IMG/VR virus record: IMGVR_UViG_3300046808_001241
Span: 1 to 64,000 of that record
Direction: 5' to 3' (one strand)
DNA length: 64,000 nt
Part shown: positions 19,622-42,950 of the stretch, in pieces
Numbering within the stretch: position 1 is the stretch's first letter
How the letters are laid out: the number at the start of each line of letters is the position of its first letter
The notes under the pieces: model-generated
Seen by the model: only the letters and a program-made list of their open reading frames with translations
Database searches by the model: none
What the model was told of the DNA's origin: nothing
Position numbers and translations under genes: made by a program

Positions 19622-19891
19622 ATGAATAAACCGAAGATTAGTTTAGGCGGAAAGAACAACCATGGACGCATGAGTGGCGCACGTTCGAGTCGTGCATCTT
19701 CGACCATTTTCAAAAAATTGCAAAAGTTGGATAGAGAAATTTCTTTTCTTAAAGCTCGTTGTAATTTGTCAAATTATTATATTTTAGGAAAAGCATTTAT
19801 AAAAAAGACAGAAGAAAGAATAGAAAAACTTGACTTGAAGAGAAAACAAGTTAGACTTGAAAGAAAGAAATATAAAAATGAAAACAAATAA
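19622..19891 (+). CDS. basic hypothetical protein
   Basis: packed ORF. Confidence 0.55.
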   Translation: MNKPKISLGGKNNHGRMSGARSSRASSTIFKKLQKLDREISFLKARCNLSNYYILGKAFIKKTEERIEKLDLKRKQVRLERKKYKNENK

Positions 19892-24602: not shown

Positions 24603-25036
24603 GGGGGTGTACTGGTTTCGACACATAGTTGAACCTAAGAGTGCATGCAGAGGTTAATCGATGGCCTCTTTAAAAATCGATTAAAAACCTAAACGCAGAA
24701 GACAACACTTCTGACCTCTTAGCTGAGGCCGAATACATCTTCAACAATGCTGACGAGTTCCTCGCCGGCGTTGAAGAGTACGAACTCGCAGCCTAAGAGC
24801 CTAATAGAGGATCCTCTAAATCTATTTTGAAACGTAGAGGAAAAGATAACAGTGTAAGCTTGTAAAAAATTACCACTGAGAAATATATGATCTTCGCATA
24901 TATAGGCAGACACAAAAAGTTAGGCCGATGAGCCACGACAGCCTTTTGTCAATCAAATGTCAAATCCATCCAAGCATGTGAAGAGCTTTTAGCATAAATT
25001 ATTTGGACAGGGGTTCGAATCCCCTCACCTCCACCA
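24603..25036 (+). ncRNA. ssrA: tmRNA
   Basis: 5' GGGGGTGTACTGGTTTCGAC, 3' GGGGTTCGAATCCCCTCACCTCCACCA with G3:U; tag ORF 24695-24796 ending YELAA*. Confidence 0.95.
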
Positions 25037-25053
25037 TAAATATATTAACTAAC

Positions 25054-25141
25054 GGACAGGTGGCAGAGTGGTCGATTGCGCTGGTCTTGAAAACCAGAGG
25101 ACCGAAAGGTTCCGTGGGTTCGAATCCTACCCTGTCCGCCA
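25054..25141 (+). tRNA. tRNA-Ser(TGA)
   Basis: GGACAGG/CCTGTCC, CTTGAAA loop, long variable arm, CCA. Confidence 0.95.
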
Positions 25142-25161
25142 CTTTCTCATTGCGAACGAAA

Positions 25162-25233
25162 GGGGGTGTGGTGCTAATGGTAACACATGGCCTTTGCAAG
25201 GCTGGGTTAAGAGTTCGATTCTCTTCACCTCCA
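25162..25233 (+). tRNA. tRNA-Ala(TGC)
   Basis: GGGGGTG/CACCTCC with G3:U70 (same stem as the tmRNA), TTTGCAA loop. Confidence 0.85.
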
Positions 25234-25405
25234 CGTTCTTACTTTTTCTTTTTATTAGCTCCTTTTTGAGATGATTTAGAACCAGCTTGCTTTGGTTTTT
25301 TCTTTTCTTTACGTTGGGAGTTGTTTCCTTTTGCCATAGTAAAATTACTTATTATTTTTTGTTAATTTTCTTGAATGTCCAAACATTTCGTGTATTATAT
25401 AAAGC

Positions 25406-25672
25406 ATGCAACCGACTATTAAAGATCTACGACGGCAAGGGTACAAGGTACGAGTAATGCACACTCGGGAATATTGGATTAAAGCTAGGGTAACCGGGCA
25501 CTCAAAAGAACTGCATGCAAGAGGAGGTTCTACTAAAATTGAACTAACCACACCCGATAAACAACACACAGTTGCAGGAGAAGCAGTTTGTTCGCTTGAA
25601 GATAACTTTAATAGGAAATTAGGCAATTCAATTGCTCTTGGACGAGCTCTTACAGCGTTAGAACACAAATAA
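25406..25672 (+). CDS. phage hypothetical protein
   Basis: ARGGST...AVCSLEDNFNRKLGNSIALGRA pattern. Confidence 0.75.
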   Translation: MQPTIKDLRRQGYKVRVMHTREYWIKARVTGHSKELHARGGSTKIELTTPDKQHTVAGEAVCSLEDNFNRKLGNSIALGRALTALEHK

Positions 25673-25680
25673 TTTAAAAA

Positions 25681-25767
25681 GCTCGAGTGGCGAAATGGCG
25701 AAACGCAAAGGACTTAAAATCCTTTACATTAGAAACACTGTGGGTTCGAGTCCCACCTCGAGTACCA
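25681..25767 (+). tRNA. tRNA-Leu(TAA)
   Basis: GCTCGAG/CTCGAGT, CTTAAAA loop, variable arm, CCA. Confidence 0.95.
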
Positions 25768-25778
25768 AATTTTAAAAT

Positions 25779-25863
25779 GGGTAGTTCGTATAGCGGCAAT
25801 TACTGAAGACTGTAAATCTTCTGCCTTCGGGCTTCGCAGGTTCGAGTCCTGCACTACCCACCA
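25779..25863 (+). tRNA. tRNA-Tyr(GTA)
   Basis: GGGTAGT/ACTACCC, CTGTAAA loop, CCA. Confidence 0.95.
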
Positions 25864-25873
25864 CTTTCAAAAT

Positions 25874-26041
25874 ATGACACAAAACACAACACAAGAAAAA
25901 GTATTCCAACTCTGTCAGGAATTGGAAGAGATGAAGCAACGCAAAAAGTCGTTCGTTAGGGCTTATAACGAAGAAATCAAGCGTTTGCAAGCAGAGATTA
26001 AAGACCTTATCAATCCCGAAGAAGCAGTTGAACTTCCTTAA
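25874..26041 (+). CDS. small coiled-coil protein (55 aa, not in ORF track)
   Basis: MTQNTTQEKVFQLCQELEEMKQRKK... Confidence 0.6.
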   Translation: MTQNTTQEKVFQLCQELEEMKQRKKSFVRAYNEEIKRLQAEIKDLINPEEAVELP

Positions 26042-26093
26042 TATTCAAAAGAACCGGCTTAGTTAGTTCGATCCCAATTAAGCATATTATTAC

Positions 26094-26360
26094 ATGAAGG
26101 ATCTCATAAGAGAGTCAGCAGGAATATTAATGGCTTTGTGCTTTATGTTCTGTTATGTACCTCAAATAGTCAAAATAGCAAAAACAAAATCTTCAAAAGA
26201 CGTTTCTCTGTCTTTAATCTTTATGTGCATGGGAGGATACACATTTGGTTTGCTTTATATGTTTTTGACGAATTTTGCTTTGTGGATATTTTTAAACTAC
26301 ACTTTTGGGCTTGTCATGTCATCGGTTCTGATATATACTTGCTTTAAATATAAAAAATAG
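26094..26360 (+). CDS. PQ-loop / SemiSWEET-family transporter
   Basis: 88 aa, three TM segments, YVPQIVKIAKTKSSKDVSL signature. Confidence 0.85.
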   Translation: MKDLIRESAGILMALCFMFCYVPQIVKIAKTKSSKDVSLSLIFMCMGGYTFGLLYMFLTNFALWIFLNYTFGLVMSSVLIYTCFKYKK

Positions 26361-26435
26361 ACTTGTAGCTCAGCTAGTCAGAGCACATCATTGATAATGA
26401 TGGGGTCGTTGGTGCAAATCCAACCAGGTCTACCA
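26359..26435 (+). tRNA. tRNA-Ile(GAT)
   Basis: AGACTTG/CAGGTCT, CATCA-TTGATAA-TGATG; atypical T-loop TGCAAAT; CCA. Confidence 0.85.
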
Positions 26436-26438
26436 AAC

Positions 26439-26516
26439 GCTCCTATGGTGTAATTGGTTAACACATCTCCCTTTCACGGAGAAGACTTGCGGGTTCGAGC
26501 CCCGCTGGGAGTGCCA
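26439..26516 (+). tRNA. tRNA-Glu(TTC)
   Basis: TCTCC-CTTTCAC-GGAGA, CCA. Confidence 0.9.
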
Positions 26517-26687
26517 TAAATACTACAAATGAAGGTAGAAAAAATAACACGAATTTACTTGCCTTTCAAAGACCATTTCAAAAAACAAAAAGACGATAAA
26601 AAACAACAACGGAAGAAAAAAACCGTTGAGCAGTCCAAAGAGAAAAAAGATAGTCATTTTATTGGATGGGCATAATTAATTTTATAA

Positions 26688-26759
26688 TGCGGGTTACAAT
26701 TCTGGGAATTGGGATGTCTCATAAGCATCTTCAGGAGGGTTCGATTCCCTCACCCGCTA
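26688..26759 (+). tRNA. tRNA with CAT anticodon (Met or Ile2)
   Basis: GATGT-CTCATAA-GCATC, GAGGG-TTCGATT-CCCTC; mismatched first acceptor pair, short D arm. Confidence 0.75.
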
Positions 26760-26762
26760 TTA

Positions 26763-26837
26763 GCCGGCATAGCTCAGTGGTAGAGCAACGGTTTTGTAAA
26801 CCGTCGGTCCTCGGTTCGAATCCGAGTGTCGGCTCCA
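26763..26837 (+). tRNA. tRNA-Thr(TGT)
   Basis: canonical cloverleaf, TTTGTAA loop, CCA. Confidence 0.95.
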
Positions 26838-26843
26838 TTTTTT

Positions 26844-26918
26844 TGGCGAGTAGCTCAGTGGTAGAGCGGTCGGCTGTTAACCGATTGGTCGTAGGTTCGA
26901 ATCCTACCTCGCCAGCCA
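26844..26918 (+). tRNA. tRNA-Asn(GTT)
   Basis: TGGCGAG/CTCGCCA, CTGTTAA loop, CCA. Confidence 0.95.
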
Positions 26919-26970
26919 TTTTAAGTGGACTTGTCCACTATTTGATAGTATCTTTATTTCACAATAAAAC

Positions 26971-27047
26971 GTACCTGTAGCTCAGTTGGATAGAGCAATA
27001 GCCTTCTAAGCTATTGGTCGCTGGTTCGAGCCCAGCCAGGTACGCCA
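26971..27047 (+). tRNA. tRNA-Arg(TCT)
   Basis: GTACCTG/CAGGTAC, CTTCTAA loop, CCA. Confidence 0.95.
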
Positions 27048-38910: not shown

Positions 38911-39186
38911 ATGTCTAATATAAATGTAGCACTAACTGAAAAGGAACTTCAAACAGCAATTTCCGGATTGCTTTTTTCGTGTTCTGTAAATGTTGTATCA
39001 AATACAAACCTTGAGTATCAAACTGAACTTCTTCAACTTGCTAAAAAGTTGAAAGATCTAAAACCTGACATCAAACTTACTGAAATCCAATTCGTAAAAG
39101 AAGATGACTACGAGGATGAAACATCTCCGTTGATTTTGGAAGCATTTAAAAGTAATATTGAAATTACATCATTTGATTGCGTATGA
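38911..39186 (+). CDS. hypothetical protein
   Basis: 91 aa; TTGACA at 38877 upstream. Confidence 0.7.
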   Translation: MSNINVALTEKELQTAISGLLFSCSVNVVSNTNLEYQTELLQLAKKLKDLKPDIKLTEIQFVKEDDYEDETSPLILEAFKSNIEITSFDCV

Positions 39187-39617
39187 GTTATGTTTCTACA
39201 AAAATTATTGAATTAGGTTCTTGTGCTTTTCGTCAATGGCGAGCTGAGGATACCCACTGCAAGTACGTACATGGGTACCAGCTAAAAGCTAAATTTTGGT
39301 TTGAAGGAGAGCTGGACGAACGAAATTGGGTTGTTAATTTTGGAGGATTGAAAGAACTTAAATACCAACTCCAACAGCAATTTGACCATACTCTGTGTAT
39401 AGCTGTTGATGATCCTTTGGTGTCATTATTTCAACAGTTGCATGAAGCTGGAGGTTGTGATCTTCGAATCATGGGAGATGTTGGTATAGAAAAAACAGCA
39501 GAATGGTGTTTTAAGAAAGCAAACAATTACGTTAAAAACCAGACTGACGGACGTTGCAAAGTGACCAAAGTAGAAGTTTGGGAACACGATTTGAATAGTG
39601 CAATTTATACAGAATAA
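39183..39617 (+). CDS. queD: 6-carboxy-5,6,7,8-tetrahydropterin synthase
   Basis: HCKYVHGY, FDHTLC, TAE, VEVWE. Confidence 0.9.
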   Translation: MSYVSTKIIELGSCAFRQWRAEDTHCKYVHGYQLKAKFWFEGELDERNWVVNFGGLKELKYQLQQQFDHTLCIAVDDPLVSLFQQLHEAGGCDLRIMGDVGIEKTAEWCFKKANNYVKNQTDGRCKVTKVEVWEHDLNSAIYTE

Positions 39618-39621
39618 CATT

Positions 39622-40380
39622 ATGATTGATATTAATACAGAAACATTGTTCTTATCTGATGATAAGATTTTTTATACAGTAGAAGGAGAAGGGGAATATG
39701 TTGGACAGCCTTCTGTCTTTATGCGTATGTCTATGTGTAACCTTACCTGTAAAGGATTTGCTTCAGCTGATAGTCCAAATGGATGTGATTCATTTATTTC
39801 TTGGTCGATTAAAAATAAAATGACCTTTAAAGAAATTTTCGAAATGATGGAAGAAAAAAATTATGTAGAGCATCTTCGAAATAGAGCTATTTTTAAATTA
39901 ACAGGAGGGGAACCTTTCATTCAGCAGAAACAGCTTCTTAAGTTTATGGAGGCTTTTAATGAGCGTTATAATTTTAATCCTCGAATTGATTTTGAGACAA
40001 ACGCCACTTTGATTCCTGACGAGCGCTGGGTGACTGATTTTTGTGCTACCTTCACTACCTCTCCAAAGTTAACAACAAACGGAGATCCAGAAGAAAGGAC
40101 ATACAAGCCAGATGTTTTGAGATGGCACGTGGACCACAAATCTGGTTTTAAATTTGTTATTAATTCTGACAGAGATATTGAAGAAATTTGGAGAAAGTAT
40201 ATTGATGATCACGAAGGAATTAACGTGCCTCTCCAACGAGTCTGGTTTATGCCTTGTTGTGGATCTAGACAAGAACATATTGAGCGAGCTCAAGCTGTTG
40301 TAGAATATGCAAAAGCAATGCATGTAAATTTTAGTCCGAGATTACACTTGCTGGTGTTTGATATGGCACTTAAAGTTTGA
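39622..40380 (+). CDS. queE: 7-carboxy-7-deazaguanine synthase (radical SAM)
   Basis: YTVEGEG, CNLTC...CDS, TGGEP, ETN, TSPK, SPRLH. Confidence 0.9.
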   Translation: MIDINTETLFLSDDKIFYTVEGEGEYVGQPSVFMRMSMCNLTCKGFASADSPNGCDSFISWSIKNKMTFKEIFEMMEEKNYVEHLRNRAIFKLTGGEPFIQQKQLLKFMEAFNERYNFNPRIDFETNATLIPDERWVTDFCATFTTSPKLTTNGDPEERTYKPDVLRWHVDHKSGFKFVINSDRDIEEIWRKYIDDHEGINVPLQRVWFMPCCGSRQEHIERAQAVVEYAKAMHVNFSPRLHLLVFDMALKV

Positions 40381-40410
40381 TTTATTTTGAAACAACTTTA
40401 ATTAAACTTC

Positions 40411-41082
40411 ATGCGTATTGCACTAATAGGAGCTCACAGTGTAGGAAAATCTACTTTAGTTGAACAATTTCTTAAAGAGTGGCCAATGTATAAAAGGCCG
40501 GAAAAGACTTATAGAGATATCATTAAGGAAAAAAACCTTAATATCAATATGCAAGGAGACAAAGAGTCTCAAAGAGCAATTCTTAATGCGTTAGTTGATG
40601 AAGTCCAGCTTGCAAGTACTTCGGATGACAAACATATTATTTTTGATAGATGTCCGGTAGATAATATGGCTTACACTCTTTGGCACTATGCAAAAGATAC
40701 AGAAGGATTTACTTCAGAGTTTGTAATGACATGTAAAGATATTGCTGCTCTTTCATTAAAACATATTGATCTTATTTTTTACGTTCCAGCTCGAAAGGAA
40801 ATTCCTCTTACTCCAAGAGAAGGACGAGAAACAGACGAAGTTTTTAGGGAAGAGATCGACAATATTTTTGATTCGCTAGTCAATTCTTATGAAAAGAACA
40901 CAGGAGCATTTTTCCCTTCAGAAGACTGTCCTGCTGTTATTCGTCTGGAGGGTCCTCCAGACATGCGTATCCCTCAAATTAAGCTGTATATTAAAGAAAA
41001 CGGTAATTACTTTGGAGAAGAAGACGGCTCTTTAATTGATGCTTCTAAGGTAGTGTTGGACGGAGAACAACAGCCGTTTTAA
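40411..41082 (+). CDS. P-loop nucleotide kinase (dNMP kinase / AAA_28-like)
   Basis: GAHSVGKST, FDRCPVD. Confidence 0.8.
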   Translation: MRIALIGAHSVGKSTLVEQFLKEWPMYKRPEKTYRDIIKEKNLNINMQGDKESQRAILNALVDEVQLASTSDDKHIIFDRCPVDNMAYTLWHYAKDTEGFTSEFVMTCKDIAALSLKHIDLIFYVPARKEIPLTPREGRETDEVFREEIDNIFDSLVNSYEKNTGAFFPSEDCPAVIRLEGPPDMRIPQIKLYIKENGNYFGEEDGSLIDASKVVLDGEQQPF

Positions 41083-41090
41083 ACGTGTGA

Positions 41091-41501
41091 ATAAGAAGCG
41101 AAATAGATTTTAGTGAAGCTCCGTTTTGCGCTATTGGAAAATCTACTATTTGTGACGGACAAGGATTATTTGCTCTAAAACGATTTGAAATAGGAGATAT
41201 AATAGCTGATTATAACATTAGCTCTAACAAGTGGATTGAATGTGATTTTAAACGTATACCAAAAGAATATAAAGAATCTTGTTGGTGGGTAGGCAAAACA
41301 ACTGAAGTTTGTTTACTAGCTTTACCAGAAAGTCTTTTTATGAGGGCAAATCACAGTAGTGACCCAAATACAGATTGGTATCCTGAACAAAAAGTATTGA
41401 GGGCAAACTCCGTTATTCTTCCTGGGGAAGAAATTACATACGAATATACAAAAGAAGTAGCTCCTTCTTATATAAAAGAATGCCCTCCTAGTTGGATTTA
41501 A
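41091..41501 (+). CDS. SET-domain lysine methyltransferase-like protein (missed by ORF track; start atypical)
   Basis: open frame IGKSTICDGQGLFALKRFEIGDIIADY...RANHSSDPN...LPGEEITYEY; an in-frame GTG at 41085 is followed directly by TGA. Confidence 0.8.
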   Translation: MRSEIDFSEAPFCAIGKSTICDGQGLFALKRFEIGDIIADYNISSNKWIECDFKRIPKEYKESCWWVGKTTEVCLLALPESLFMRANHSSDPNTDWYPEQKVLRANSVILPGEEITYEYTKEVAPSYIKECPPSWI

Positions 41502-41907
41502 GCTTTATCTTACTTGAAAATTCGTTAAACTTTCTTTGAGGCTTCTGTTGTTTTAAACTATTTTCAGCAGCACTCTCTAAGTCTGGAGAAGTCAAATCAA
41601 ACTTACCGCAATAAGGTATTGGAAGCTGGTTCATCATTCCATCAAAATAATTGTCTATAAAGTTGCTTATTTTTTGAGTGATGGCCTTCTTTGATATGCA
41701 CATCACTTTCGGAAAAGCGCTCTGTGTACTTTTATAAGTGGCTTCTATACTTTTGAAGCAAAATCCTAACAAAATGCGTCTTCCGTCTGCACTATTAAGT
41801 CTGATGTTGTTTTTGTTAGCAAAATCAGTCGCAGCTCTTAATCCTTTTTCGAAAGAAGGATATGCATCAATAACACAAATTCGGGACTTAGGAAAGGTTT
41901 TTGTCAT
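41488..41907 (-). CDS. hypothetical protein
   Basis: 139 aa, overlaps the denA-like stop. Confidence 0.7.
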   Translation of the reverse strand: MTKTFPKSRICVIDAYPSFEKGLRAATDFANKNNIRLNSADGRRILLGFCFKSIEATYKSTQSAFPKVMCISKKAITQKISNFIDNYFDGMMNQLPIPYCGKFDLTSPDLESAAENSLKQQKPQRKFNEFSSKIKLKSN

Positions 41908-42317
41908 TTTAGGAAATTTTTAGGTGGCTTACCGATACGAACATTTATTATGCCATTGTAGAATTGTTCATTCAAGAGCACGTCATATTCCAGCTGTTTC
42001 TTTATTTCTTTATACCCCAATTCCCATTTTGATCCACCCCATTCTAAAATTTCAAAAGTAAAGTTTTCCTTGCCATGCTTTGCAATGTCTTCATTCAACT
42101 CTTTTGATGAGCCGGTATAGGTCTTCCAATCGCTTTCTTTATGGTCTATGCGGTTTCTTGTCTTTCCTTTTAATGGTTTTCGTTTGACTCGAGAAACACA
42201 TTGCTTTTTTCCAATATACTGGCGACCGTTAACATTATTGGTAATCATGTAAATGAAACCAAAAGGATTTTCGGTTGTATAAAGACTTTCCTTGATTGTC
42301 CAGTGACCGAGATCCAT
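41904..42317 (-). CDS. denA: GIY-YIG endonuclease II-like
   Basis: GFIYMITN...RQYIGKK, ESDW.TYTGSS; 137 aa, the size of T4 EndoII. Confidence 0.8.
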   Translation of the reverse strand: MDLGHWTIKESLYTTENPFGFIYMITNNVNGRQYIGKKQCVSRVKRKPLKGKTRNRIDHKESDWKTYTGSSKELNEDIAKHGKENFTFEILEWGGSKWELGYKEIKKQLEYDVLLNEQFYNGIINVRIGKPPKNFLK

Positions 42318-42318
42318 T

Positions 42319-42546
42319 TTAAGACTTTTTCTTTTTTCTAGTTTTTTTCTTTTTGGGCTTGCGCATTCCAGACCGAGTCATAACTCCCTTGTAACTTCCG
42401 TACAAGTTACGTGCATCTCCAGGAGCATAATTGTCTCCACTGAATGCTGTAGCTGTTGCTCCAACATTTGGTCCAAAGGCAGATCCTTCTCCTCCAGACA
42501 TTACGTCTTCAACAAGGACTTCTTCTACAATTTTTTGAAATTCCAT
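42319..42546 (-). CDS. small late protein with basic tail
   Basis: TAAATA on the minus strand (42552-42557); MEFQKIVEEVLVED; KKKK tail. Confidence 0.75.
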   Translation of the reverse strand: MEFQKIVEEVLVEDVMSGGEGSAFGPNVGATATAFSGDNYAPGDARNLYGSYKGVMTRSGMRKPKKKKTRKKKKS

Positions 42547-42597
42547 AATAGTATTTAAGAAAATTTGTTGACATTAATACTAAGTAAACGACATTGA

Positions 42598-42950
42598 TGC
42601 ATCGTCTGTTAGCCCTAGCCAAAGCGTTATAGCAGGTCTCAGTAGTGAGATAAACAACAAGGATCAGCGATTAATAAATTAAAAACACATCTCGAAGTGC
42701 GCTATTGCGTGACCGTTGTTTAGCATTTTTTGCTAGGACCACTCAAGCCAGCCCTTATAGGACAACCGAGGGGGCATATTAATCATGGGATTTTTTGAAG
42801 CTTGTTACAACCCGACTGAGACTCGTTTTATACGGAGTATTAAAGAAAGGGAGGTTTTCCCAATAATGGGGGACCTCCCCTCCTTCGATCTGAATTGCCG
42901 GAATATTAAAGATACTTTAAAAGGGGCGGGAGTAGATTTTTTAATTTTTT
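42598..42950 (+). ncRNA. candidate structured ncRNA or origin upstream of uvsY
   Basis: TTGACA at 42568; several hairpins including GGGAGGT...ACCTCCC (42849-42879); no convincing ORF. Confidence 0.4.

Follow-up and report, generated by a model that had tools for sequence, protein, structure and literature searches.

A SET-domain frame behind an AAA_28 gene

Between a gene for an AAA_28 P-loop ATPase/kinase-like protein and a convergent gene of 139 amino acids, the window (the whole stretch of DNA analysed here, the first 64 kb of a 217,182-bp IMG/VR record) contains an open frame of 136 codons with the features of a SET domain, preceded by a start codon and an immediate opal stop (Table 1). 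The initial annotation had described this frame as a hidden gene, missing from the list of open reading frames and carrying SET hallmarks. Both descriptions hold: only the part from ATG 41340 onward is listed, and the motifs GQGLFA (41157-41174), RANHSSDPN (41343-41369) and GEEITYEY (41424-41447, with an invariant last Tyr) all lie in the same frame.

Table 1. Features of the SET locus in the window, and cargo found in the same slot on related contigs.
Feature	Position	Strand	Description and evidence
AAA_28 P-loop ATPase/kinase-like gene	40411..41082	+	223 aa; Pfam AAA_28, E-value 1.9e-13; 'thymidylate kinase'-labelled PHROG, E-value 5.7e-17
Hypervariable cargo slot	41083..41487		From the AAA_28 stop to the stop of the convergent 139-aa gene; holds SET in the window; relatives compared
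GTG start with opal stop TGA as codon 2 (lesion)	41085..41090	+	Sequence; homologous codons in relatives
SET-domain frame	41091..41501	+	136 codons and TAA (41499-41501); Pfam, homologues, alignment
SET catalytic core	41157..41447	+	Pfam match, invariant columns, AF2, Foldseek
Convergent 139-aa gene	41488..41907	-	Borders the slot on the right; overlaps the SET end by its last 14 nt; ORF list
SegE-like GIY-YIG homing endonuclease	41904..42317	-	Pfam SegE_GIY-YIG, E-value 5.7e-31; conserved in relatives
Slot of contig L016	3669-4277 (own contig)		202-aa gene
Slot of contig L019	1788-3379 (own contig)		Leucine-rich-repeat-like 309-aa gene and 206-aa gene
Slot of contig L026	3664-4413 (own contig)		249-aa gene

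The source genome is that of a freshwater T4-like phage of 217 kb, with terminal repeats and a GC content of 36.7%. It encodes 15 tRNAs plus a tmRNA. The tmRNA gene is full-length (24603-25036, plus strand; Rfam RF00023, 125.7 bits, E-value 1e-48, model positions 1-374) and is directly followed by ten tRNA genes clustered at 25054-27047; the tag predicted by ARAGORN is unusually long, with 33 residues and an ELAA end. ARAGORN also made a tRNA-like call with a four-base anticodon (gacg) at 19632-19706 on the plus strand, which lacks an Rfam tRNA match at the gathering score and could be either spurious or an unusual tRNA.

Searching the 136-codon frame against Pfam, a check that had been proposed with the initial annotation, identified the SET family (PF00856) at 32.7 bits versus a cut-off of 22.4 (E-value 1e-7). 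Residues 23-119 of the frame aligned with profile positions 1-104 of 105, i.e. with the whole domain, and a genome-wide Pfam search agreed (32.4 bits). The match is far above chance, because 11 homologues of 136-170 residues were found at E-values of 3e-76 to 3e-38 (84-51% identity) and the alignment of all 12 sequences has 38 invariant columns. These include both glycines of the GxG motif (G23 and G25), N87, H88, P92, N93 and the catalytic Tyr (Y119). The subfamily is small, comprising 9 clusters at E-values of at most 1e-30 and 30 at E-values of at most 1e-10 among 1.84 billion representatives.

Structural comparisons agreed with this assignment. Compared with the PDB, the alignment profile matched the SET domains of MLL1, MLL2-4, SETD8 and NSD (E-values of 4.5e-7 and weaker). 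An AF2 model built from the alignment (pLDDT 88.3, pTM 0.79) has a predicted SET beta-fold, and a Foldseek search of the PDB returned 167 matches at E-values of at most 0.001, of which the best 50 were SET or SET-like PR domains (probability 1.0). The top PDB matches among those listed were vSET of chlorella virus (3kma, E-value 2.9e-6, TM 0.70 on the target), MLL1 and SETD8, while fold matches among viral models were to SET proteins of uncultured tailed phages and giant viruses. As judged from its sequence, 41091-41501 is a genuine SET-domain gene, of the protein-lysine-methyltransferase type by family. Its product, if made, would be a minimal SAM-dependent SET enzyme of 136 residues with all SAM-binding and catalytic motifs.

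The protein belongs to no PHROG family, and neither its DNA nor its protein sequence had a match among GenBank phages. An IMG/VR search with the single SET protein gave no match, a pattern scan of GTDB genomes found no cellular homologue, and a literature search returned no paper describing what a phage SET protein does. The earlier statement that SET domains are rare in phages is roughly borne out by PHROGs and GenBank, but uncultured tailed phages already have proteins annotated in this way, as does Stenotrophomonas phage Ps15, where ORF62 is annotated as SET domain-containing (PMC9025141).

Among known systems, vSET (PBCV-1 A612L; PDB 3kma and 1n3j) is a minimal viral SET protein and histone H3K27 methyltransferase. 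Like the phage protein, it is virus-encoded, measures about 120-136 residues and is reduced to the SET core, lacking pre-SET and post-SET zinc modules, and NHSxxPN and ELxYxY motifs occur in both. Nevertheless, the two are only 24% identical, their sequence-profile match is partial (E-value 0.0053), and a conserved N-terminal segment (RxxIxFxEAP) and a C-terminal PPxW tail are particular to the phage protein. As the host of the phage is a bacterium without histones, the target must also differ. The SET domains of MLL/KMT2 and SETD8/KMT5A gave the best PDB sequence-profile matches (E-values of 4.5e-7 to 1e-5, TM about 0.6), with alignments spanning the GxG, NHS and EELTYDY motifs; they reside within large multidomain chromatin proteins that need partner subunits, whereas the phage protein stands alone with 136 residues. 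It resembles the SET proteins of uncultured tailed phages (BFVD A0A6J5L8Y2, A0A6J5P3I3 and others; fold match E-value 2.3e-6) in being small, phage-borne and uncharacterised, although identity to this set and to the Ps15 protein is about 20% or less. Considering its closest sequence and fold relatives, a protein-lysine target would be the default expectation. The host nucleoid or ribosomal proteins and the phage proteins that the initial annotation put forward as targets are speculative candidates.

A freshwater metatranscriptome run (X4) yielded a contig with a stretch of 168 nt identical to 41292-41459 of the SET gene. After 41459, this contig diverges into a short other C-terminus without the conserved PPxW tail, and it may represent a recombinant variant or a chimeric contig. 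The match is a weak hint that SET relatives are transcribed, with DNA carry-over as another possible source.

The cargo slot and its neighbours

We compared the neighbourhood of the SET gene with that of 19 IMG/VR contigs found through the AAA_28 protein (58-97% identity). In 17 of these, the gene order is kept: PTPS/QueD-like, QueE-like, AAA_28, slot, the 139-aa gene, the SegE-like gene and a 75-aa gene (all three on the minus strand), and UvsY-like. In the other two (L033 and L034), the upstream genes alone match. The QueD-like (PTPS) and QueE-like radical-SAM genes, located at 39177-40380 in the window, are conserved across the phage group. The 139-aa gene had no Pfam or PHROG match, and is present in 17 of the 19 SET-less relatives as well as in all SET-bearing ones.

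None of the 19 contigs contained a SET relative. Their slot measures about 10 nt in most cases and holds unrelated genes in L016, L019, L026 and L027 (Table 1). The genes flanking the slot of L016 are 92-97% identical to those of the window while the slot cargo differs, and therefore the closest known neighbourhood carries other cargo. The same slot holds SET in L002, L003, L006, L007 and the contig of P0005, and SET genes of the distant clade sit in other neighbourhoods. Because 19 related contigs keep the neighbourhood without SET, the gene is, on this comparative evidence, optional and dispensable cargo of the slot. A loss-of-function allele should thus be tolerated, which makes a simple null allele more plausible a priori.

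The SegE-like homing endonuclease always lies two genes from the slot. In two freshwater metagenome runs (X1 and X2), a second contig, about 85% alike, was found from 42008 onward (42008-42771), covering the SegE-like gene and sequence downstream of it. The two contigs had depths of 25.8 versus 30.6 in X1 and 41.1 versus 48.6 in X2, and their joints skip about 200 nt. Each sample therefore contains two coexisting strains that differ in the homing-endonuclease region.

The start region and the state of the gene

The TAA stop of the AAA_28 gene (41080-41082) ends 2 nt before GTG 41085, such that the sequence reads TAA, AC, GTG (41085), TGA (41088), ATA (41091), AGA. GTG 41085 is the sole upstream in-frame start of the SET frame and TGA follows it directly. 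In the ORF list, the first canonical start in the SET frame is ATG 41340, and therefore no in-frame ATG, GTG or TTG occurs between 41091 and 41340. A start at ATG 41340 would cost residues 1-83, including the GxG motif. The complete SET frame thus cannot be reached from a canonical start in the window, as that of a functional protein-coding gene would be. In these respects, the initial annotation had read the sequence correctly: the only upstream GTG is blocked, and the internal ATG would remove much of the domain.

The homologues clarify how this arrangement arose. All of them have exactly 136 codons counted from the conserved N-terminal segment x-R-x-x-I-x-F-x-E-A-P. In the distant clade (L008-L010, L013, L014 and P0005-P0010), ATG or GTG occupies the position of ATA 41091 of the window. 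In the close clade, this ancestral start codon is now ATA, and a canonical in-frame start lies one or two codons upstream: L003, L006 and L007 read GTG ATA, while L002, whose protein is 84% identical, reads ATG GGA ATA. The nearest relatives, from runs X3, X5 and X7, are 95-99% alike over 41030-41180 and read GTG AGG ATA, differing from GTG TGA ATA in the window by T>A at 41088 and A>G at 41090. Only the window has a stop at this variable second codon, which is Gly, Arg or absent across the relatives and is therefore not conserved. TGA, AGG and GGA would each be one step away from a shared ancestral AGA.

Wherever a relative carries SET, its start follows the AAA_28 stop at a distance of 1-4 nt. 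The window has no Shine-Dalgarno-like motif at a useful distance, the nearest GGAG being 25 nt upstream of ATA 41091. Together, these observations point to termination-reinitiation coupling, and we consider it most likely that SET is translated in this way from the AAA_28 gene. As for signals of independent SET transcription, promoter-like sites were no commoner than in shuffled sequences and terminators were absent.

Apart from the TGA, the gene does not look like a decaying pseudogene. The TGA is its single lesion, 136 codons are open, and pairwise dN/dS between the window and its close relatives is 0.16-0.27, as in intact relatives (0.13-0.21 among intact genes), although a very recent inactivation would look alike. 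That the remainder of the SET gene is untouched suggests that the change to TGA is recent; either this is so or the gene is still used, and dN/dS mostly mirrors the history before the mutation. The start codons of the homologues, another check that had been proposed, were canonical ATG or GTG in every relative with DNA, with no stop in frame. With AGG, GGA or no codon in the nearest relatives and no other decay, the suggestion of a fresh nonsense allele gains support.

Taken together, we think that the window probably carries an opal allele of recent origin, by which a dispensable accessory SET gene is silenced or strongly weakened, rather than an exotic start. In the phage group, the usual state would be a GTG or ATG start for SET just past the AAA_28 stop, with coupled translation. 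In the window strain, the poorly conserved second codon would have mutated to opal TGA. Ribosomes ending AAA_28 would then reinitiate at GTG 41085 and terminate after one codon at UGA 41088, and the outcome would be a null or strongly weakened allele. Residual output, via UGA readthrough or initiation at AUA 41091, would not exceed a few percent of the normal level. Initiation at AUA in E. coli reporters amounts to 0.02-3% of that at AUG (bioRxiv 10.1101/063800), although reinitiation at AUA 41091 after two close terminations might be better than in these reporters. The TGA allele is dominant in two samples and is at least not strongly counter-selected, which fits neutral loss and a functional gene alike.

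An alternative that we regard as unlikely is that the SET gene is still expressed, through reinitiation at the near-cognate AUA 41091 or UGA readthrough, with the start-stop serving as an attenuator for a deliberately low dose. Expression from ATA 41091 or by readthrough had been among the options of the initial annotation. ATA 41091 is indeed exactly where the distant homologues begin with ATG or GTG, but the arrangement is not conserved, as each relative examined was found to start canonically in frame, with no stop. Likewise, the frame is intact and has been under purifying selection over its history, but pairwise selection mirrors the time before the mutation. The dominance of the TGA allele would suit continued expression, and so would the low-level AUA initiation known from E. 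coli, although its reported efficiency is low, the placement of the nearest Shine-Dalgarno-like motif is unfavourable and RNA structure around the start was not above that of shuffled sequences (z 0.70).

Minimal start-stop frames and near-cognate AUU or AUA starts serve translational control in bacteria, and the window resembles such systems in having a start and an immediate stop directly upstream of a near-cognate-led frame. Known regulatory start-stop cases are conserved, whereas this arrangement occurs in one strain alone, whose relatives have plain canonical starts. We accordingly regard it as quite doubtful that the GUG-UGA mini-frame and the AUA at the ancestral start form a working attenuator, in which two terminations within nine nt and AUA reinitiation would supply a low, tolerated dose of SET that methylates a host protein (e.g. 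a nucleoid or ribosomal protein) during takeover. If this were true, the locus would represent a natural AUA-initiated phage gene and provide the first functional hint for the SET subfamily of freshwater phages.

Other readings and significance

A different question is what the protein would act on. We consider it improbable that the SET-fold protein methylates small molecules or nucleobases, working with the QueD-/QueE-like genes in a 7-deazaguanine-type pathway, rather than protein lysine. The SET gene does adjoin the PTPS/QueD-like and QueE-like radical-SAM genes, but the 19 SET-less relatives keep the QueE-like and AAA_28 genes, and most of them the PTPS/QueD-like gene too, which argues against an obligatory link; distant SET homologues, moreover, occur elsewhere. 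BurB (9l4v), a SET-fold protein with the small molecule SMM, is among the lowest-rmsd structural matches listed (2.4), whereas protein-lysine methyltransferases lead the matches by both sequence and fold. In addition, Pfam TGT identified no DpdA-type transglycosylase gene in the 217-kb genome.

The initial annotation had also considered a sequencing error, and the possibility that the TGA arose during sequencing or assembly, with a sense codon at 41088-41090 in the real phage, might seem attractive since TGA differs by a single base from GGA in L002. We inspected the Logan assemblies of X1 and X2, runs that differ in both sample and study; these assemblies had been made with a different assembler. 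A 9817-nt contig was present in both, at depths of 33 and 54, with 0 differences to the window over 39500-42033, TGA included. X1 and X2 may include the window's own source sample; even so, the same TGA in independent assemblies of two runs makes a random read or assembly error very unlikely, and the artefact as a whole is hard to credit. Neither assembly had an alternative contig at 41088. Such contigs drop rare variants, and a minority intact allele may exist in these samples.

This genome uses TGA as an ordinary terminator. Among its stop-to-stop frames, 118 of the 319 with at least 100 codons (37%) and 39 of the 127 with at least 200 codons end in TGA, and the longest frames become no longer when it is read as sense. 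Moreover, TGA serves as the AAA_28 stop in L003, at a site occupied by TAA in the window and in the other near-clade relatives. No suppressor tRNA (anticodon TCA) was found among the 15 phage tRNAs, and no SECIS or other Rfam family in 40900-41700. It is thus barely conceivable that, after a normal start at GTG 41085, an amino acid is inserted at the TGA through code 4 or 25, as selenocysteine or by a suppressor tRNA of the phage, even though the alignment of GGA (Gly) in L002 with the TGA of the window first suggested code 25 and the phage has many tRNAs and a tmRNA, since the codon itself varies among relatives.

Several specific routes around the stop were also tried and rejected. An alternative code with TGA as Gly or Trp, prompted by the GGA of L002, is contradicted by stop usage and the homologous TGA terminator of L003, and selenocysteine or a structured recoding signal by the lack of an Rfam match or unusual fold. 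Ribosomes slipping by -1 out of AAA_28 would join the SET frame ahead of TGA 41088 and still meet this stop. The third frame, opened by GTG 41087, closes after 8 codons, and shifting by +1 behind GTG 41085 leads through GAA to a TAA.

What is new here is a member of a small SET subfamily of freshwater T4-like phages with a strain-specific opal at codon 2; the annotation of SET proteins in phages was itself already known. The blocked start is probably an ordinary mutational loss of a dispensable gene. The locus provides an example of a gene missed by gene callers after one base change removed its usable start, and of how relatives and independent assemblies can tell a real nonsense allele from an artefact, recoding or a conserved odd start. 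In addition, freshwater T4-like phages are seen to carry a small SET-methyltransferase subfamily, so far uncharacterised, as exchangeable cargo in a defined slot close to a SegE-type endonuclease. The intact SET relatives, rather than the allele in the window, are the more useful lead and reasonable candidates for biochemistry.
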